Below are positions 33,913 through 47,000 of a DNA stretch of 64,000 nt, in pieces. Each line of letters starts with the position of its first letter. Position 1 is the stretch's first letter. The notes beneath the pieces are model-generated. The model saw only the letters and a program-made list of their open reading frames with translations, did not search any database and was not told the origin of the DNA. Source of the DNA: Piromyces finnis finn (Eukaryota; Fungi; Neocallimastigomycota). A program made the translations under genes and the position numbers. The DNA lies in the NCBI GenBank assembly GCA_002104945.1, contig MCFH01000003.1, positions 1,364,001 to 1,428,000 on the forward strand, read 5' to 3'.

Positions 33913-36900
33913 ATGGCTGAGGATACAGAACAAGATGGAACTCTTAATTCCGTTTTATATCAACTTTTATTAGCATTTGCTATTGTTGGTGCATTTATGA
34001 TTGGATATGAATTATTAAGACAATCAAAAATTGGTAAATATATTTATGCACCAAGGTTATTATTATTACCGGAAAATACACCAGAAGTTGCAAATGGGTG
34101 GTTTGCTTGGTTTAGCAAAAATAAAAAAGTTGATGAAGATTATATTTTAAATAATAATGGATTAGATGCTGTAATGGTTTTAAAGTTATATAGAATGGGT
34201 TATCAAATGTTTTTGATAATAGGATTAGTTGTATTAATTTTCACTCTACCTGTTAATATTTTTTTCAGAGACAGAGACAGAAAAATTGCAGATCAAAAAG
34301 AAGATTTATTATTTGATTATACTTCACCAGCTAATAACACAGAAAATAGAGAAGTACTTGTTACAAACACAACTGTTATCGATAGAGTTAATCCAAGTGT
34401 CAATATTTCAAAGATTGAAGAAACTAAAGCATTATTAGATACCTTTAAAAGAGATTTACAAGAAGATGTTTTCCAACTTGATATATCAATAGAAGAAGAA
34501 AGAAATAAATTCTTTGATGAAGAAATTAAAATATTAAATGAAATCAAAAATGGAAAGCATCAAACAGATAATAATAGTAATAATAATGAAAATAGTAATG
34601 AAAATGTAAATGCTAGTGATAATACTCCAAATGAAAATTCTAATAATAATAATGGTGAAAATAAAGATGAAAATGGAAATGCAAGTATTAATGATCAAAA
34701 TAAGGAAGAAACAAAGGATAGAGAAATAAATGTTTTTGATGATTTAACAAAAAAAACAAATGATACATTAAATACAATTAAAGATGAACTTAATTTTGAT
34801 ATAAGAGAGTATATTTTCTTTGATACATTAAAAGAAGGAAAGGAATTATTTAGTCTTTTACATTTAGTTTGTGTATATTTTGTTGTTTGCTTTATTTGCT
34901 ATAAACTTTTTAAGGTTTACCAGGAATATATTGGCTGCGTTGAAAAATATGTTAAAGATGGCGGTATTGTTCAAGAAAGACAATTATTTGGTGAAATTCT
35001 TCAACATAGTACTATTATGGTTAGAAATATTCCACCAGAACTTCAAGATGATGAAAGATTGATGAATTGGTTCTCAAAACTAGGTGTTGGTAAAATAGAA
35101 AGTGTTGTTATTGCTCGTAGTAGAAACAAAATAAGAAGACTTGTAGAAGCAAGAACAAAAGTATTAAATGCTTTAGAAGACGATTATGTTAACTGGCTTA
35201 ATAATATTAAAGATAAAAAAACTGGTGAAGGTTTTTTAGGAAATGCCTTAAAAAATGTTGTTCGAAATGATGCAGATGATATTGGTGAAAAAGTTTTTGA
35301 AGATAATGATGCTTATAGACCAAAAGAAATTGTTTTTAAATATGGAATAATCCCAGTAAGATATGTTGATTCTATTCAATATCATGAAAGAATGTTAAGT
35401 GAATTGACTGAACAAATTAAGGAATTAAGATTAGAAGCTGGTCAATCAAAGAAATGGTCACAAACAGCCTTTATTACTTTTAATAATCATCAATCTGCAA
35501 AGATAGCAGCACAATTAATCCTTTATTCTGCAAAAAATCCAAATGTAATGCTTGCTAGTTCTGCTCCACATCCAAATGATCTTCTTTACAAAAATTTAAA
35601 TATTAGAACAGAAAGAAAAACTTATCGTTTTATTTTATCATTAATTGCTTTATACTTTGTTTGTTTCTTATTAACAATTGTAGTTATGGCAACTAAATAT
35701 GAAATGTTAAAAGATATTTTAACTAGTGAAAAATTAAAATATCTTCAAATGGAAAAAATATTTAATGCTATTGACAATGATCCAAAATTAATGGCTTTAT
35801 TCAGTTCATTCTTCCAAGTTATCTTACTTAACGCTTATTTATCATGTGTTCCATATTTGATCAAGTTTATTACTAATTTCCAGGGATTTGAAACTAAATC
35901 TGATTATTACAACAGTGTTTTAAAGAAATACTATATATTCTTAGTTATCTTAATTATTTTCTCTTTATCTCTTTCAGCTTTAGTTTCAAAAATAGTTGAT
36001 TCGACAAACTCTGAAAAAATGAATATGAATGAAGTAGGTGAAATGTCAACAAATATTATGGGTAGATTCATGGATGAGCTTACCTTTACTCATTTTGTAG
36101 ATTCATTAACCAGTGAATTATCCAAGAATTCCATTATTTATTTCAATTATGGTATTCTTCGTCTTCAATCTTTTGGATTCGAAATCTTTAGAATTGGTGC
36201 TGTTGTTTCATTTTTCATTAGTAAAATATTAAAGAAAAGTAGTCCAAGAGCCCAACACCTTGCAAACCAAATGGCTACTCCACCAGATTATAGTATTATG
36301 CTTGCAGTTCCATTAATTTGTTTCACTCTTTTCGTTACTTTTTCAATCGTTAATCCTTTCATTCCATTTATTGGTGTCATTTTCTTCTTTATTGGTTATC
36401 ATGTAATGAAGAATCAATTCATCTATGTATATATTAAGGAATTTGAAGCTCAAGGTTACTTCTTTGTTACTTGTTTCAATAGAATTATCTTTTCCCTTTA
36501 TCTTTTTGAAATCTTCATGTTTGGTTACTTCTTGGCCGTATTTAATGGACCAGAAACAAAAGGAAAATATATACCATACTTAGTATTACCAACTATATTT
36601 ATTACTATATATTTCCAGAGGTATTGTAGTAGATGCTTTAAACCAAGAATAAAGAATGTTCCAGTTGATTTATTAATTTCAAAAGAAAGAAAAGAAAAGT
36701 ATTCTAATGAATATCAAAGAAGAACCATTTTTGGTAGAAGAGAAAGTTTCATTTCTGATTACTTTTCTGAAGATTCGTTTACTTCCTGTGCTACACATAT
36801 TACAAGTTTGGATAGTAAACCAAATAAAGAAATATTAAAAATGGCAGAAACTCAAGCTCCATCTTTACCACCATATTACGAAGCTAATTCATACAATAAT

Positions 36901-37038
36901 CCTGCTTTAACAGAACCATTATATGCACCATGGATTCCTGAAGAAGCCCAATCTATCTTTACTAAAGCATCTGTAAATCATATATCTAATATATGTAGAG
37001 ATTGTTATAAATGTGATAAGGAATCAAAATTTGAATAG
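33913..37038 (+). CDS. OSCA/TMEM63 (CSC1/RSN1-like) osmo-/mechanosensitive cation channel, copy 2, intronless
   Basis: Single 1041-aa ORF with IYAPR, GLDAVMVLKLYRM, TIMVRNIP, AFITFNNHQSAKIAAQ, APHPNDLLYKNL, FQGFETKS, DYSIMLAVPL, NQFIYVY and FEAQGYFF..FNRI. Confidence 0.95.
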   Translation: MAEDTEQDGTLNSVLYQLLLAFAIVGAFMIGYELLRQSKIGKYIYAPRLLLLPENTPEVANGWFAWFSKNKKVDEDYILNNNGLDAVMVLKLYRMGYQMFLIIGLVVLIFTLPVNIFFRDRDRKIADQKEDLLFDYTSPANNTENREVLVTNTTVIDRVNPSVNISKIEETKALLDTFKRDLQEDVFQLDISIEEERNKFFDEEIKILNEIKNGKHQTDNNSNNNENSNENVNASDNTPNENSNNNNGENKDENGNASINDQNKEETKDREINVFDDLTKKTNDTLNTIKDELNFDIREYIFFDTLKEGKELFSLLHLVCVYFVVCFICYKLFKVYQEYIGCVEKYVKDGGIVQERQLFGEILQHSTIMVRNIPPELQDDERLMNWFSKLGVGKIESVVIARSRNKIRRLVEARTKVLNALEDDYVNWLNNIKDKKTGEGFLGNALKNVVRNDADDIGEKVFEDNDAYRPKEIVFKYGIIPVRYVDSIQYHERMLSELTEQIKELRLEAGQSKKWSQTAFITFNNHQSAKIAAQLILYSAKNPNVMLASSAPHPNDLLYKNLNIRTERKTYRFILSLIALYFVCFLLTIVVMATKYEMLKDILTSEKLKYLQMEKIFNAIDNDPKLMALFSSFFQVILLNAYLSCVPYLIKFITNFQGFETKSDYYNSVLKKYYIFLVILIIFSLSLSALVSKIVDSTNSEKMNMNEVGEMSTNIMGRFMDELTFTHFVDSLTSELSKNSIIYFNYGILRLQSFGFEIFRIGAVVSFFISKILKKSSPRAQHLANQMATPPDYSIMLAVPLICFTLFVTFSIVNPFIPFIGVIFFFIGYHVMKNQFIYVYIKEFEAQGYFFVTCFNRIIFSLYLFEIFMFGYFLAVFNGPETKGKYIPYLVLPTIFITIYFQRYCSRCFKPRIKNVPVDLLISKERKEKYSNEYQRRTIFGRRESFISDYFSEDSFTSCATHITSLDSKPNKEILKMAETQAPSLPPYYEANSYNNPALTEPLYAPWIPEEAQSIFTKASVNHISNICRDCYKCDKESKFE

Positions 37039-39389
37039 ATCTTAAGAAATTGAGTATTAAAAAAAAAAAAAAGTAACTCAAAATATTAAAATTAAATACT
37101 GAATTAAACGTTTTTTTTTGTTTCCATAGAAAATTCGTTTATATACCAAGGTAAAAAAAAAAATCTTTTTCTTTTTCCTCAATTCTTTAATAAATTTAAT
37201 TTTAAAATTTCAGTTTAATAGAACGAATTAAAAAAAAAAAAATCACAAATTATATTTTCTATTTAAAAAAAAAAAAGAAAAGAAACCTACAAAGAATTAT
37301 ATAGACGAGGTAAAGATATAAACAAAAAAAAAAATATAAAGACACCAATTAATTTATTTCATCTTTTATATCAACTGTTGATATAATCATTTTTTTTTTG
37401 TTTCAATATTTTTATTTTTAATAAAAAAAATAGTAATAATAAATAACGGCTTTAAATTATTTCTTTCATTTATTTTTCTAAAAAGAAGGCATGATAGATA
37501 TAATTGAATAGGATTACATATATATATGTATTCTATAATACGAAAATATACAAAAAAAAAGACAAGAAAATGAAGGAAATAAAGAAATATTTTATTTCTA
37601 AAATAACTAATATATCTTACACATTACAAAAAAAGAAAAAGATAATAATAACATTACATATTTCATTATATACACATCTATTATTAATATAATATTTTAT
37701 ATAAAATATACCATTATTATTAAGTAATTTTTATACATATCAATTGAATAAAATAAAATAAGATGATAAAAAAGTTTAATAATAATGAAAAATAGATGCT
37801 TTTTAATATTAATATCTTTTTTTTTTTTTTTTTTTTTTTAGTTCATTTCGTTTATATAATTCAAATATACAATAAATAATAATTTTTTATATAAAATACC
37901 TTTTTTTTTTTATTATTGTTACAAAAATTAAATTATATTTTTATATTATTTATACAATCAATCTATTTATATATTATACTATATTATAATTATAGTTTAT
38001 ATTTTTAATATACTTTTTAATAATAATAATAATAATAATAATAAAAACTAAAATAAGATAAAACAAAACAAAACAGAAGCAAAACAAAGCAAAAAACAAA
38101 CATGGAAAAAAAAAAAAATTAATCAAATAAAATAAACAAAATAAAAAGCAATTATAAAATAAAATATAATAATTATAGTAATAAGAATTCCAGATATTTA
38201 CACTATAATTAATAATAATATAATGAAAAGTAAAAAAAAAAGTGAAAAATCAAAAAAAAATTATAATATTATCACATTTTAAAAAAAAGAAAAGTTATAA
38301 TAATAGAACGTTATAAAAATTCAAATTATTAAATATCTCAATATTAAAAATAAATAAATATTAAAAAATTAATAAAAATAAAATAAATAAAAATGATTTT
38401 CTTTTTATTATTGTATCTGTATTGAAATAAAATTTCATTTTATAGATATTAGTAGAGTTAAAGTGCAATTTCTTTATTTTTTGTTGATATTTACAAAAAG
38501 TGCTGCTTTTATATTATTTAATTTTAATTGTATTTAAATTAGAATGAAAGAATAATTTTATCAGAAATAAAATTAGAATCATTATTAATCAATCAAGATG
38601 GTCCCTTTATTGATTTATTTCTTACTATTCCTATTTGTTGCTTCAGTCCTATTTAATAACAAAAAACATTATATGGTTTTATCATGACAATTGAATAGAT
38701 ATATATTTCATTACTCAAATATAAAAATATAATAATACAATAATCATTAATAAATAAACTATCTTGAAAAAAAAATAAATTATTTAAACATAAAAACACA
38801 TTAATTGATTAAATTCTTTAAAATTAAATACATGGGAATAAAAACACATAAAGTTTTATTTTATATTTTTATTATTATTATAATTATAATTTATTATAAT
38901 TTTATTTATTAATTATATTAATTATAATTTGTTCTACATAAGAACAAGAACATTGTAAAAATAAACTCTTTATACATTATAAATAATACTTTATAATTAC
39001 TATTTGTAAATGATATAAATTATATAAATATAAATGATATAAATATTTTAAATATCAAATGCTTTTTTAATGTTAATGCTTTTAATATGCGTGTAAGAAG
39101 TTAAAACGATATAAATTCTTGAGAGAATTATAATTACTTGCTTTCTTTTTCTCTTTAATATTAATATTACTATATAATATGACATATATATTTTTATAAA
39201 ACTACATATATATTTTTTCTTAATCTTTTTTCCTTTCATATTAAAATTTTTGAATTATTAAAATATTTGAATTATTAAAATGTGTTAATATTAAAACATG
39301 TTAAATATTGTTTATACATTGTTTAAATATTGTTAATCTACTTATAAGTGTTCAATTAACAACTATTCATTCAATTAATATTCATTCAA

Positions 39390-39792
39390 TTAATACCAAC
39401 GCCATGGGTTGTTGTTGTTGTTGTTACCCCATTGATTCCATTGGTTGTTATTGTCCCATTGGTTCCATTGGTTCCATTGGTTATTGTTGTTGTTGTTGTT
39501 ACCCCATTGATTCCATTGATTGTTGTTGTTGTTTTGGTTCCATTGATTGTTGTTATCCCATTGATTCCATTGATTGTTGTTGTTGTTTTGGTTCCATTGG
39601 TTGTTATTGTTTTGGTTCCATTGGTTGTTATTGTTTTGGTTCCATTGGTTGTTATTGTTTTGGTTCCATTGGTTATTGTTGTCCCATTGGTTCCATTGAT
39701 TGTTGTTGTTGTTGTTTTGGTTCCATTGGTTGTTATTGTCCCATTGGTTCCATTGATTGTTGTTGTTGTTGTTTTGGTTCCATTGGTTACCT
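39390..39792 (-). repeat. Coding tandem repeat (QWN/QWD/QWG plus poly-Asn)
   Basis: 20 QW dipeptides separated by N runs. Includes three perfect 24-bp copies (gttgttattgttttggttccattg) at 39600-39671. Confidence 0.95.
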
Positions 39793-40601
39793 TGGTCAAA
39801 GTTAGCACCTTGGTTATCATTAGATTGTGGTGGAGCTTGAGCAGCACCGCCATTACCTCCACCATTACCTTGACCAATGTAAACCTTAGCATATGGGAAA
39901 TCGGCTGTACCACTAGTACCAGATCCATTACTACCGGCTTCTCCTAAAATCTTAGCTTCATGCATCTTACCCATGGTCATACCAAGCTTTTCCCATTGAG
40001 CAAAGTGGGCTGAAATATCAATGGTACCACATTCACGTGGTGTTTGACGGATACTGAAGTATTGCTTGAATTGTGTATCTCCATCAATAGATGGTCCAAA
40101 ACGGTCGTTTTCAAAAACAGTGTATTGGGCTCCATCAATAGTGAAGTCTCCGTGCTTCTTGTTACCAACCCAATCACCTGGACGATATTGACTGAGCCAG
40201 TTATCAACAATGTAGAATTCTACAAGTGGATTTCTGGTCCAACCATAAATACCAACATATGAATAATCAACATTGGCTATGTTTTGCTTGACAAGCTTGA
40301 AGTCTGCAAACATATGTCCGATTTGAGAGTGGGATTGGGTACTGTCAAAGGAAAGACCTGTACGACATAAGTAATCCTTAGCATTGGAGAAGGAACATGA
40401 GAATGAACCATCGGAATAGAATGTAGCACTGTTGTTACCACTATCAGCCCACATTTCATATCCAACTCCGCCAATGGATCCAACCTTGTTTCCGGTTTCT
40501 TTTACACTTTGTCCAGAGTGTGAAGCTCCACTACAGAAACTTTGAGCTAAGGTTGAGGTAGCTAAAGATAAAACTGCTGGAATGAATTGTAAAAATTTCA
40601 T
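39390..40601 (-). CDS. Secreted GH11 endo-1,4-beta-xylanase with an N/Q/W low-complexity C-terminal tail
   Basis: Signal peptide MKFLQFIPAVLSLATSTLA. GH11 motifs GYEMWAD, SYVGIYGWTRNPLVEFYIVDNW (nucleophile Glu), GPSIDGDTQFKQYFSIRQ, CGTIDISAHFAQWEKLGM and AKILGEAG (acid/base Glu). Intronless. Confidence 0.97.
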   Translation of the reverse strand: MKFLQFIPAVLSLATSTLAQSFCSGASHSGQSVKETGNKVGSIGGVGYEMWADSGNNSATFYSDGSFSCSFSNAKDYLCRTGLSFDSTQSHSQIGHMFADFKLVKQNIANVDYSYVGIYGWTRNPLVEFYIVDNWLSQYRPGDWVGNKKHGDFTIDGAQYTVFENDRFGPSIDGDTQFKQYFSIRQTPRECGTIDISAHFAQWEKLGMTMGKMHEAKILGEAGSNGSGTSGTADFPYAKVYIGQGNGGGNGGAAQAPPQSNDNQGANFDQGNQWNQNNNNNNQWNQWDNNNQWNQNNNNNNQWNQWDNNNQWNQNNNNQWNQNNNNQWNQNNNNQWNQNNNNNQWNQWDNNNQWNQNNNNNQWNQWGNNNNNNNQWNQWNQWDNNNQWNQWGNNNNNNPWRWY

Positions 40602-44030: not shown

Positions 44031-47000
44031 TTATTTGTCACTATTTTCCATTTCAATGACAAGTTGCTGGAAGACATCAACATACTTGAAATCATTTGAT
44101 TTAAGGTTATTGTAGAAGAGACTAAACTTATTACAGTTTGCTATTTAATTTAATTTTTTTATGGTTAGAAATAAATAATTTAAATAAATAAATATATAAT
44201 AACTAAAAAAAAAGTTACCTGAATCTGTTAAATTATTAAGCTTAATAATGGTTTTAAGAGTACTACGAATTAATTCCATATGCTTATCCTTTTCTTGTTT
44301 AACATCGGATTTCTTTGTTTTCTTATCAAGAGTTTCTTTTAATGGGTCTACCATATCTTCTAAGTTTTGTGAAACAATGTTTGGTACAATAATACATAAT
44401 TTTTGAATAATTAATTGTACAAGAACTCTAATTTCATTATTTGGATCTCTAAGACCAGCTAATACACGCTTAACGAAAATAAAGAAATCAAGGTAGTTAG
44501 GTCTGTTGTTTAATAAAGTATACATACAATCAAAAGCACTCTATTAAAAGTTTGATAATAATAAATGAAATAATATTTTATTAATATATATATATAAATT
44601 ATAATATTATATTTTCCAAATATAAATTATTATTAATCGTTTTTATTTAGTTTACCTTTCTAATTTCTAAACCATCATCAACTTGATGTTTGAAAGGTCC
44701 CATTTCAACAGTACGGATTAATGAAGTATCAATATTAGTTTGGTCGTATAATAATGGAAGTAAGTCTGAAATACAGTCACAGATTAAATCTGGTTTATTA
44801 TAGGCAGCGGAATTTAAAGCAGATAATGAAATTCTACGAAGTTCCTGTTGATTTAAAATAATTTATATATTTATATATTTATTATATAGGTAAATAATAA
44901 TACATTTATAGAGCGAAAAAAAAGAGTAGGAATTAAATAATAATACTTACGAGATCTGTATCACCAATTAATTTTAAAAAGTCAAAGATCATAGTTTTCA
45001 ATATTTCATCAAACTTTTGGTTCTTTTGTTCAGTAAAGGTGTATCTAATAGCAGTAATGACAGTTGAACGAATAGTATTGTTGGTAGAATTGATACGATT
45101 CTAATGACGAATAAAAATTTATAAAAGTATAAAAAAAAAAAAATCAATTTTTGGCAAACAATTATATAAAAATAAAATGAGTAATTAAATTTAGATACAA
45201 AAATATATATAATAATAAATATAGAATTATTTTTTTACTTGTAAATCAGGTAAAAGTAAAGATGGTGAGCTTAAACTGAATTTACCAATACATTCAGCAA
45301 TAATGCTTTTGACACTGTTTTCTTTAGCACCTTCACATAAGTTAAATAATAAGTTCCATATTTCTTGAATATATGGGAATTCTTGTCCATTCTTTAAATC
45401 ATCACTCTTAATATATTTATTAATGGTTTCTTTTAATGCTAATAAAACAAAGCGTTTGCTTTCATTTCCATTGTTGATACATTCAACTAAATATGGAACA
45501 TAAACTTTAATATTACCTAAAGTAATATTACCTAATGCAAAAGCAGCAGCATGCTTTCTTTCATCATTACCAGATGAGAAAATATTGTAAATATTAATGT
45601 GAACATTATTGTAATAGGTATATAAATCAATTTTGCTACCAATTTCACCAAGACATAATAATGACAAGTAAATAACATTATCATTACTACTGTCATTGAT
45701 ATTCTTAACAAAGTTTTCTGTTAAATCTGGACAATCATTAATCATATTAATACAAATAACAGCAATGCATGTAGCTAAAACAGAATAGGATTGTTTAGTT
45801 AATTTATCATCATTAATTTTTTCAGTAGAAACACCCTTAATTAATTGTGAATAGAATTTTCTATTTTCCTCAGCACTATCAGCAGAAGATATGACTCTAA
45901 CACAATTCAAAAGAGATTCTTGGCCATTACCACTATCGACAACATTACTATTTAATTTAATTATATTACATATAATTTCTTTTACACTTTCATTGTTTTC
46001 AATATATACTCTATTACAATTTTCAATTACAGAAGTTAAACAATTTAAGGAATCTGGAAGAATATGTAAATCAGTTTCAATATTGGCAAAAATATGAATA
46101 ATTTCACTCATAATTAAGTGGTAAAGATCGTATGATAATTTTTCTTTGTATTTATTCATTACAGATTCTAAGTATCTTAAACTTACAACGCGATATTGAC
46201 GTTGAGATTGGTGTAATAAGCTAGTTGATTCTGTAATAGTATCAGAAATAATAGAAGTTAAATTAATACCTTTAGCTTGTTCGTTGTCAATAATCAATAA
46301 TGGTGAATTTATAATTTTATTTAATGTTTTTAAAGTAACAATTCTTGTTAATTCATTCTTTAAACGTTCAAGTATGATTGGTAATGCTGTAGTATTTAAT
46401 TCGTCAGCAGGGATCTTATCACCAACATGATTTAATAAAACACCTAAACAAGAAATACAATTTTCTTTAACTTCTTTATCAGAATCTGATATACTTAAGT
46501 GATCCATAATAATTTTATAAATTGAGTTGAAATAATGTGAATAGGATTCATCAACATTTGAAATTACATAATTCTTTGTATCTTCATTATAAGTAATTGG
46601 TCTTAAGAAAGTGATTAATTTACTTAAAATAACAAAGGATTCACATGTAATTTTATAGAAACTATCATTAGCTGCCTTTTCCAAAATTCCAATAATAGTT
46701 TCATAGTACTTTGATAAATCATCGGTTGAATGACTGTTAAAAAGTTCTTTTATGAAAAGTAATGCTTCAAGCTTTAAGTTTGAAGAAATCAAATTTCTAC
46801 TGTTTCCAATAAGTTGAGGTGTAACAAAAATTTGTTCAATTGAATTAATAAATGAATCAAGGTAATCACTTAAATTACATTTTGCTTTTAACATTTCATT
46901 TAATAATTCATATATAATTTGACGTGAAGTAATAGGCTTTGTAATAATTTGTCTTGATATAGTTTTACATATAGTATCAATTAAATTGTATAATTGTTCT

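Follow-up and report, generated by a model that had tools for sequence, protein, structure and literature searches.

Gene and protein architecture

What, if anything, does a xylanase gain from ending in a long tail of asparagine, glutamine and tryptophan instead of a dockerin or a carbohydrate-binding module (CBM)? The question is raised by a gene in a 64,000-nucleotide stretch of Piromyces finnis DNA (contig MCFH01000003.1, positions 1,364,001 to 1,428,000; this whole stretch is termed the window, and positions are counted from its first letter). The window gene is a single intron-free open reading frame (39390-40601, minus strand, 403 aa), whose product runs from a signal peptide through an intact GH11 domain and a G/A/P linker into the N/Q/W tail. 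Its translation bears out the preliminary description of this DNA, which had reported a xylanase with a terminal, Cys-free N/Q/W tail of 20 QW units ending in PWRWY; the span given there for the tail (39390-39830) covers the tail and the stop codon, but also takes in part of the linker. The features, all on the minus strand, are:

40545..40601, minus: putative signal peptide, residues 1-19 (read from the sequence; pLDDT <50 for residues 1-19)
39879..40541, minus: GH11 catalytic domain, residues 21-241 (Pfam PF00457, AF2 and alignment)
40218-40220, minus: catalytic Glu E128 (invariant in a 32-sequence alignment)
39939-39941, minus: catalytic Glu E221 (invariant in the same alignment)
39804..39878, minus: Gly/Ala/Pro/Gln/Asn linker, residues 242-266 (composition; pLDDT about 30-55)
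39408..39803, minus: Asn/Gln/Trp repeat tail, residues 267-398 (composition; pLDDT about 30, no secondary structure)
39583..39674, minus: perfect 24-bp tandem repeat within the tail, 92 bp, 3.8 copies, unit encoding NQNNNNQW (repeat scan)
39393..39407, minus: C-terminal cap P-W-R-W-Y (end motif shared by tail-only genes)
39390..39392, minus: stop codon TAA (open reading frame call)

The putative signal peptide opens with a short basic stretch, followed by a hydrophobic core and a site of small residues, with probable cleavage after Ala19. In the AF2 model the GH11 domain is all-beta with one helix (pLDDT ~90), and a Pfam search with the whole protein returned Glyco_hydro_11 (PF00457) as its sole match (residues 46-230, E 1.1e-40, 139.6 bits at a cut-off of 27 bits). 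From standard GH11 motifs we take E128 and E221 to be the nucleophile and acid/base pair. Judged by its sequence, the protein is a secreted, catalytically intact GH11 endo-xylanase. The full-length protein is present in public databases without a description; an exact look-up found none on record on other contigs, in a search that possibly did not cover P. finnis records. Four probable RNA runs from the same organism contain 31-48% of sampled words from the locus, a share that would fit a transcript minus its AT-rich flanks. A 15-bp tandem duplication at 39364-39395 extends across the gene end into the start of the 3' flank.

Composition and predicted disorder of the tail

Including the cap, the tail comprises 137 aa (residues 267-403; 39393-39803) with 75 N, 28 Q, 22 W, 5 D, 3 G and one F, P, R and Y each, i.e., 55% N, 20% Q and 16% W. 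It is built of units such as NQW, DNNNQW and NQNNNNQW, and is devoid of Ser, Thr, N-x-S/T sequons, Lys and Cys, the last Cys of the protein being residue 191. The perfect copies of the 24-bp unit are in line with the recent expansion suggested earlier, and this region also yields three identical overlapping matches in the pattern search. Asn codons across linker and tail (residues 244-403) are AAC rather than AAT at a ratio of 61:18. AF2 places residues 246-403 at a pLDDT of about 30 and thereby predicts the tail to be intrinsically disordered.

The richest 80-aa stretch of the protein contains 66 N+Q. The threshold commonly used for Q/N-rich prion-like domains, that of Michelitsch & Weissman 2000, is reportedly at least 30 Q/N per 80 residues, and by this composition criterion the tail would be counted as prion-like. 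The label thus holds for composition, but says little by itself, as Asn-rich low complexity is the norm in AT-rich gut-fungal proteomes (PMC6883316).

Spacing of the Trp residues in multiples of three (a PPII-like register) applies to 14 of the 21 gaps in the window gene and recurs in several others, yet fails as a general rule, since P0030 and C165g use a period of 7 and P0049 uses 8 and 11. Without a constant spacing across lineages there is no fixed register for matching a polysaccharide lattice. A word search with the tail alone matched only the query and was uninformative on the rarity of such tails, as 8000 low-complexity candidates swamped it.

Absence of a dockerin or CBM1

That the protein carries neither a fungal dockerin nor a CBM1, as had been claimed, agrees with the Pfam search, in which the window protein gave no match to the dockerin family (CBM10-like, PF02013) at E up to 1 and none to CBM1 (PF00734; Cys-knot with QCGG core), while the same tool scores the CBM1 of paralog L003 at E 5e-9. 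Nor was either module found when all frames of some 1.7 kb of downstream DNA, which is intergenic with 13-14% GC, were examined (39052 upwards and 39008 downwards). These findings bear on the notion that the tail-only protein is an annotation artefact, with splicing or a frameshift joining the mRNA to a dockerin or CBM exon further downstream. Repeats are indeed liable to assembly error, but apart from the lack of dockerin- or CBM1-like coding potential downstream, the same cap terminates eight paralogs as well as independent metagenomic contigs drawn from several samples, and some of these contigs are mRNA-sized, begin at a common 5' position in different samples and show an A-run near one 3' end. 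We consider an artefact scarcely credible.

By composition (N and Q dominant, about 10-16% W) the tail qualifies as a linker; a linker by position joins two folded modules, and here the reading frame stops after the cap with no module downstream. The tail thus works or descends like a linker, yet by position is none.

The repeat as a general gut-fungal linker

The same repeat connects GH11 to CBM1 in paralog L003 (= P0022), P0018, P0021, P0025, P0049, P0110 and P0114, and GH11 to CE4 in P0077 and P0081. It was also found in a GH10 enzyme (Pfam-supported) and, as identified by reading adjacent sequence only, beside GH6, GH45, probable GH16-like and probable CE8-like sequence. An initial impression that the repeat is xylanase-specific came from a first pattern that matched only GH11 and GH10; a looser pattern added the other families and disposed of this idea. 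A G/A/P/Q/N segment stands before the repeat in all paralogs. Read in this light, the window tail is what gut-fungal carbohydrate-active enzymes (CAZymes) ordinarily use as a W-studded N/Q linker, minus its downstream module. The previous statement that the tail is terminal and links to nothing is true of the window gene, but the tail is no one-off: it belongs to a family of at least eight copies and consists of the usual gut-fungal linker repeat.

Many secreted enzymes carry the repeat as a soluble linker and would be harmed by aggregation, which speaks against self-assembly of the tail, i.e., Trp stickers in Asn/Gln spacers gathering free xylanases into a condensate, hydrogel or amyloid, comparable to cohesive N/Q-rich FG-nucleoporin or yeast prion domains. 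The idea draws on the N+Q content of the richest 80 aa, the 16% aromatic residues, a charge of almost nil and the predicted disorder, and PMC3553378 and PMC4283134 report N/Q-rich FG domains as cohesive hydrogels or condensed phases. AF2 shows no beta structure in the tail, although it is a poor judge of amyloid. We give self-assembly a small chance.

Probable origin by CBM1 loss

Most likely, the ancestral order was GH11-linker-CBM1 and CBM1 was lost later, as directly visible in one other lineage only: the catalytic DNA of P0112 is identical to that of the CBM1-bearing P0114, and an exact 12-base CBM1 core is kept just after its stop. In P0112 the recent decay of a CBM1 gene can still be seen. 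No CBM1 remnant was detectable in the 3' flanks of the window gene or the C165 copies, and for this reason CBM1 loss in the window lineage is deduced from its relatives. As the +2 frame of the QCGG core reads M-W-W-Y-W, we considered whether the W-R-W-Y cap could be the start of a CBM1 read out of frame. For the window lineage this was rejected, the local DNA alignment of cap plus flank with the P0018 junction plus CBM1 scoring no higher than the range of shuffles; in a loose sense the idea holds for P0112, with its stop followed by a decayed CBM1.

A capped and conserved tail-only family

At least eight tail-only GH11 genes are present in the P. finnis genome, metagenomic relatives with the same cap are P0030/P0032, P0057 and P0107, and tail-only genes occupy at least three places on the catalytic-domain tree. 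The W-[R/H]-(x)-W-[Y/W] end is common to 8/8 P. finnis tail-only genes and the metagenomic relatives just named. At the DNA level, 12 bases of the cap are identical among the window gene, C165a, b, c, e, f and the metagenomic P0030, and the 3' flanks of the window gene and the C165 copies are unalignable. As a true protein end, the cap motif is confined within the P. finnis genome to these GH11 genes; other matches to the pattern that we fetched from the genome lie in open frames of 4-46 aa, one 15-mer being a dispersed repeat.

Such a conserved terminal aromatic-basic-aromatic motif, restricted as a real protein end to these genes, resembles a short linear recognition motif. This brings up the alternative that the tail or its W-R-W-Y cap anchors the enzyme by binding fungal-wall chitin/glucan, scaffoldin or another cellulosome protein, as an attachment other than by dockerin. 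We know of no partner for either tail or cap, which together with the lack of Cys and of a dockerin-like fold makes this a slim prospect.

Between the window copy and the C165 copies, dS is 0.60-0.65 and dN 0.027-0.032 (dN/dS about 0.04), so that the window gene, by these values, is an old paralog. At 74 sites in the tail a single-base change would create a stop; at dS 0.6 about 15 stops would be expected, and the probability of none is about 4e-7 under equal rates, a rough value only, as the neutral expectation is made less certain by turnover of the repeat and by gene conversion between paralogs. Capped tails have a Trp density of 13.3-18.2%, versus 7.7-11.3% in CBM1-bound linkers (Mann-Whitney p 0.0004; 0.002 after collapsing near-copies), a comparison made among related, non-independent sequences.

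An inert spacer, that is, a leftover linker that binds nothing and is tolerated or kept for generic reasons (solubility, secretory passage, an entropic bristle or resistance to rumen proteases), with the cap as exopeptidase protection, would account for several of our observations: many enzyme families of the P. finnis genome employ the repeat as a generic linker, Asn-rich low complexity is common in the AT-rich proteomes of gut fungi (PMC6883316), paralogs differ freely in the length of their tails (about 100 to 180 aa), and the P0112 lineage visibly descends from a CBM1 gene by recent decay. It sits less easily with the enrichment of Trp in capped tails relative to true linkers, given that Trp is costly and has only one, G-rich codon while the genome has a GC content of about 20%, with a tail that stayed open and capped across a dS of about 0.6 despite the stop-prone sites, and with cap DNA conserved across species. 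We regard an inert spacer as unlikely, though worth serious consideration: retention, conserved cap and Trp enrichment indirectly support the view that the tail is more than an inert remnant.

A proposed multivalent hold on the plant cell wall

The explanation we lean towards, albeit with a little less than even confidence, is that a gut-fungal linker-type repeat which had lost its module was kept, enriched in Trp and capped, and works as a multivalent sticky tail. Here, CBM1 would have been lost from a GH11-linker-CBM1 ancestor, after which the retained tail would have become about 1.5 times richer in Trp and acquired the fixed W-R-W-Y cap. Spaced by flexible, polar Asn/Gln, the Trp side chains may stack on the sugar rings of xylan or cellulose or, alternatively, on lignin aromatics. 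The tail might thereby keep a xylanase that is free of the cellulosome attached to plant cell walls by a multivalent, low-affinity hold, standing in for the lost CBM without a structure of its own. As Ser, Thr and Lys are absent from the tail and Arg occurs once, glycosylation and cleavage by trypsin-like proteases are ruled out, which would suit it to the protease-rich rumen. Counting against a sticky tail, its retention may serve solubility, secretion or protease resistance rather than binding, and the W spacing differs in period between lineages.

In plant-cell-wall enzymes, linkers are usually regarded as passive, glycosylated tethers. By contrast, we are dealing with an unglycosylatable tether that lost its cargo, was long kept, is enriched in Trp and has a fixed end, in eight gene copies as well as in other gut fungi. 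If it binds substrate, it would represent a binding tag of great simplicity, with no fold and open to transfer to industrial xylanases, and would explain how dockerin-less gut-fungal enzymes stay on fibre. Existing data sets are blind to the tail, because with no Lys and one Arg it is invisible to tryptic proteomics, trypsin leaving one peptide of about 160 aa (V240-R401), and because, of the six near-identical C165 copies, at least three are cut short at residue 242 in public gene models.

Comparison with known systems

Closest to the window protein are the GH11-linker-CBM1 xylanases L003 (= P0022) and P0018, with catalytic domain identities of 92% and 94%, respectively, the same signal peptide, G/A/P linker and QW-type repeat, and membership with it of one starred clade (97) on the tree. 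Their repeat has only 4-7 Trp (8-11%) and is followed by a short Ala-rich junction and CBM1, whereas the window protein has 22 Trp (16%), neither junction nor CBM1, and the W-R-W-Y end.

CBM1 folds into a disulfide-bonded knot of some 36 aa that presents three aromatic residues on one face, and its exposed aromatic side chains are established to stack on sugar rings. The working principle proposed for the tail would be the same by analogy, in a sequence with 22 Trp, no Cys and no predicted fold. Q/N-rich prion-like and N/Q-rich FG-repeat domains share with the tail aromatic stickers, uncharged N/Q spacers and predicted disorder. Such domains are intracellular and use Tyr or Phe, while the window protein is predicted to be secreted and uses Trp.

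For CAZyme linkers of ruminal fungi, Asn- or Thr-runs and glycosylation have been stressed (PMC3490864; PMC6883316). Like the tail, these linkers are low-complexity, disordered, Asn-rich and typical of Neocallimastigomycota; the tail differs in its lack of Ser, Thr and sequons and in its regularly placed Trp, a feature that in the searchable literature was noted only for Ruminococcus.

The Asn/Gln/Trp linker of R. flavefaciens 17 XynA, to which the preliminary description rightly pointed, has 45% N, 26% Q and 16% W according to PMC2721979, through which we cite Zhang & Flint 1992 on the linkers of XynA and FD-1 ORF03896. Such linkers also occur in the R. flavefaciens ATCC 19208 and YAD2003 genomes and in rumen Ruminococcus metagenome-assembled genomes (MAGs); N/Q-rich GH11 linkers of rumen Ruminococcus contain 14-16% W and 38-52% N. 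Some connect GH11 with GH16, and others run into GH10, CE4 or an esterase domain, the upstream partner in the latter cases lying outside the open frame or the fetched stretch. The XynA-type linkers and the window tail have nearly the same composition, stand behind a GH11 domain, and in both W is usually followed by N and spaced mostly by 3-10 residues. However, the Ruminococcus linker always lies between two modules, whereas the window tail is terminal and capped, and W is preceded mostly by D or N in Ruminococcus and by Q in the window tail.

Joint transfer of GH11 and linker from Ruminococcus was discarded on account of the mere 33% identity between the GH11 domains. Among the matches listed, the bacterial sequences closest to the fungal GH11 are of the Fibrobacter type (55% identity), and none of the listed bacterial-type GH11 matches contains an NQW repeat. 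For these reasons the likeness of these low-complexity repeats is probably convergent. Possible, though doubtful as yet, is the broader idea that Trp-dense, capped N/Q tails evolved as a fold-free 'disordered CBM' for carbohydrate or lignin, replacing CBM1 on free gut-fungal xylanases, with the Ruminococcus GH11 counterpart, of near-identical composition in an unrelated rumen bacterium, as a convergent answer. If so, the W-studded N/Q linkers of rumen CAZymes in general would be adhesive elements rather than passive tethers.

Anatomy of the xylanase gene and its surroundings

The features of the window gene and its neighborhood are listed here, with residues numbered on the encoded protein.

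39390-40601, minus strand: GH11 gene, 403 aa, a single uninterrupted ORF (ORF translation)
Residues 46-230: Glyco_hydro_11, the sole Pfam domain (E 1.1e-40)
Residues 242-266: G/A/P/Q/N linker between the GH11 domain and the tail
Residues 267-403: N/Q/W tail (N75 Q28 W22 D5 G3 F1 P1 R1 Y1)
39583-39674: DNA repeat within the tail, 24-bp unit, 3.8 perfect copies
33913-37038, plus strand: neighboring ORF, 1041-aa multi-pass membrane protein
45227-46894, minus strand: neighboring ORF, 555-aa helical-repeat protein

By sequence, the product is a secreted-type enzyme with an intact GH11 domain, both catalytic glutamates (E128 and E221) being present and invariant among the relatives compared; the proteins that match it best come from Piromyces finnis, at 94-97% identity. 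The tail contains 20 QW units, ends in P-W-R-W-Y (the aromatic cap) and lacks Cys, Ser, Thr, Lys and any glycosylation sequon, a composition with which glycosylation would be impossible and trypsin sites almost absent. AlphaFold2, run on a 32-sequence alignment, gave a pLDDT of ~90 for the GH11 domain and of ~30, without any secondary structure, for residues 246-403, which are confidently predicted to be disordered. At the DNA level, a 15-bp tandem duplication (39364-39395; 2.1 copies, 100% match) runs across the stop codon into the start of the 3' flank.

The ~1.7 kb 3' of the stop codon have a GC content of 13-14% (surrounding genome ~13-30%) and, in any frame (39009-39051 excluded), hold no notable ORF and nothing resembling CBM1 or a dockerin. 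The preliminary description is thus borne out in its account of a Cys-free N/Q/W tail following GH11 and a G/A/P linker, with 20 QW units, a PWRWY end and perfect 24-bp DNA repeats; its claims that dockerin and CBM1 are missing and that the repeat is terminal, linked to nothing, likewise agree with the single Pfam domain and with the downstream sequence. The gene stands alone on its contig (C156), flanked by unrelated ORFs and long AT-rich spacers; both neighboring ORFs are non-CAZyme, and the gene lies outside any CAZyme cluster.

The repeat as a linker in other enzymes

Among 120 listed relatives, the same repeat leads to a CBM1 in P0018, P0021, P0025, P0049, P0110 and P0114, whereas in P0077 and P0081 a CE4 deacetylase follows it; in the paralog P0022 (L003), four QW units lie between GH11 and CBM1. 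A looser pattern, Trp-studded Asn-rich linkers, occurs in further enzymes of the P. finnis genome (read from L161, L162, L163, L159, L165 and L037): in a GH10-CBM1 gene, whose domains were confirmed by Pfam, and next to CBM1-GH6, dockerin-GH45, GH16-like and CE8-like plus CBM1 modules, identified from adjacent sequence alone. Since the repeat serves as a linker in several other enzymes, it is neither unique to the window protein nor xylanase-specific, the latter being ruled out by the GH6, GH45, GH16-like and CE8-like occurrences. What is unusual in the window protein is that the repeat leads to nothing, and the tail descends from, or is kin to, the gut-fungal linker.

Two details may be added. 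In the dockerin-GH45 gene, a Trp recurs every 11 residues within an Asn run. On contig C57 (~576 kb; L164:2402-4372), a 657-aa open frame with a dockerin-like start and an acidic PVE-repeat region continues into an N/Q-repeat stretch of over 300 aa, in which Trp and I-D-W-N-N motifs recur regularly; no catalytic domain was seen in this frame.

A family of tail-only GH11 genes

Searches of the P. finnis genome (56.46 Mb, 232 contigs) used first the tail itself and later a DNA pattern encoding W-N-Q...Q-W-N-Q, and matches were translated. Further genes in which GH11 is followed by the repeat without another module (tail-only form) were found on contig C165.

C165, 228-248 kb, mixed orientation: six near-identical tail-only GH11 genes, proteins of 364-402 aa, ends Q/P-W-R-W-Y/W
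C165, 402 kb: further tail-only GH11 gene, 446 aa, end A-W-H-W-Y

Tail length differs between the six copies, and their array adjoins the CBM1-bearing P0018 gene at 251 kb. The window protein including its tail is already deposited (NCBI, UniRef, EukProt). Of the six near-identical C165 copies, at least three are represented solely by a 242-aa 'xylanase, partial' (ORX45766.1, ORX45768.1, ORX45769.1) that ends just before the tail, and the exact 364-aa product of copy C165a has no entry in the protein collection searched. In the metagenomic contigs of relatives P0030, P0057, P0107 and P0112, coding stops at the caps and AT-rich non-coding sequence follows; several of these contigs are mRNA-sized, with a 5' end identical between different samples. 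That the tail merely reflects mis-annotation appears very improbable next to these contigs and the lack of CBM1 or dockerin similarity 3' of the window gene.

A whole-genome pattern search placed W-[R/H]-W-[Y/W]-stop at genuine protein ends in these GH11 genes only, the other matches read lying in open frames of 4-46 aa. An identical 15-mer that would code for W-H-W-W-stop is present at seven loci (C1:461210, C24:251243, C46:230692, C79:146543, C79:638824, C192:186901, C207:18826), with the same 9-aa open frame at five and frames of 7 and 29 aa at the remaining pair; it probably belongs to a dispersed repeat rather than marking a gene end.

Probable origin by loss of CBM1

Comparison of two metagenomic gut-fungal contigs, those of P0112 (L184:1440-1520) and P0114 (L188), captures what looks like a fresh loss of CBM1 through frame change and decay. 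P0112, which ends in P-W-R-Q-W, matches the CBM1-bearing P0114 at 100% identity in its catalytic DNA. Some 20 bases past the P0112 stop, in a 3' flank of 15% GC, 12 bases of the CBM1 core (coding for QCGG) are retained exactly. No CBM1 remnant was found 3' of the window gene or the C165 copies, which fits an older loss event. In the catalytic-domain tree, the window gene falls into a clade (support 97) of 16 sequences, all with W-type repeats, within which tail-only forms lie intermingled with CBM1 forms. Tail-only forms with a cap turn up at no fewer than three distinct positions in the tree; what it tells about the order of events is limited by the FastTree support values, by gene conversion and by short branches.

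Maintenance and possible function of the tail

In the catalytic part, the window copy differs from the C165 copies by dS 0.60-0.65 and dN 0.027-0.032, and alignment of the flanking DNA is lost; the window copy is an old paralog. In its 411-base tail, 74 single-base changes would make a stop, 72 of them G:C-to-A:T transitions, the class that AT-rich genomes favor. Under equal rates and with dS 0.6, ~15 stop hits are expected and P(none) is ~4e-7, a rough figure, since neither repeat turnover nor conversion enters into it. Asn codons of linker and tail (residues 244-403) are 77% AAC; the genome at large favors AAT, and the tRNAs found match AAC only (PMC6883316), so that this bias speaks for translational selection and against AT-driven slippage junk.

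Twelve bases of the cap are shared without change by the window gene, C165a, b, c, e and f and the metagenomic P0030. The CBM1-bearing paralogs are devoid of the cap, and conversion from them therefore does not explain its identity. Such conservation might point to attachment, by way of the cap, to the wall of the fungus or to a cellulosome protein, which we rate as rather improbable.

Trp makes up 13.3-18.2% of capped tails, whereas it accounts for 7.7-11.3% where the same repeat leads to CBM1; the three tail-only forms that are uncapped or have only just decayed (P0112, P0024 and P0020) are linker-like (9.3-10.8%). The difference in Trp density gave p 0.0004 (Mann-Whitney) and 0.002 with near-copies collapsed, values that are not clean probabilities because the sequences are related. 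Taken together, the tail appears to be maintained, beyond mere tolerance. An inert spacer retained for generic reasons would be in keeping with the role of the repeat as an ordinary linker and less so with the Trp enrichment; we consider it unlikely, though worth keeping in mind. Self-assembly in the manner of prion-like or FG domains would suit a disordered N/Q/W chain, but the repeat is shared with ordinary linkers, and we give this reading little chance. Our tentative preference is that the tail would act as a multivalent, low-affinity adhesive, holding the xylanase to cell-wall polymers by many weak contacts and standing in for the lost CBM1. As Trp spacing has no universal period, a lattice-matched register is not claimed.

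Comparison with known systems

In the searchable literature, outside which many subscription papers lie, Trp-bearing N/Q linkers are described for Ruminococcus alone and no description of capped, module-less tails was found; Asn-rich linkers of ruminal fungi receive no more than a passing mention there. New here are an estimate of how old the window copy is, the argument from stop sites, a cap that is conserved at the DNA level and restricted to GH11 genes, the higher Trp content of capped tails, P0112 as an intermediate and, among the matches listed, the limitation of the repeat in bacterial and archaeal CAZymes to rumen Ruminococcus.

The Asn/Gln-rich, Trp-containing linker of R. flavefaciens XynA, named in the preliminary description, is documented for strain 17 (N 45%, Q 26%, W 16%), as are five linkers of FD-1 ORF03896 (N 33%, Q 35%, W 10%), their Trp being termed 'particularly unusual' (PMC2721979). 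Pattern matching across 185,579 genomes of bacteria and archaea yielded at least 119 stretches, most by chance; among the matches listed, in-frame N/Q/W-rich CAZyme linkers occurred in rumen Ruminococcus only.

R. flavefaciens ATCC 19208 (L054:4549-6984): GH11-linker-GH16, linker ~360 aa, 52% N, 16% W
R. flavefaciens ATCC 19208 (L093): similar linker leading to CE4, its upstream side outside the stretch read
R. flavefaciens YAD2003: linker leading to an esterase domain, its upstream side outside the stretch read
Ruminococcus MAG from buffalo: linker leading to GH10, its upstream side outside the stretch read
Two more Ruminococcus MAGs of rumen type, one of them from yak rumen: GH11 followed by the linker, stretch or contig ending there

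The GH11-GH16 linker is among the longest Trp-bearing linkers seen. These linkers contain 14-16% W, mostly followed by N and spaced 3-10 residues apart; N amounts to 38-52% in four N/Q-rich linkers, and two MAG linkers are Gly-rich with ~25% N. Joint transfer of domain and linker from Ruminococcus is unlikely, because the GH11 domains are only 33% identical and the closest bacterial relatives of the fungal domain, among the matches listed, are Fibrobacter-type (55% identity) and there devoid of the NQW repeat. For low-complexity linkers alike in composition, convergence in two rumen fiber degraders is the simpler reading.
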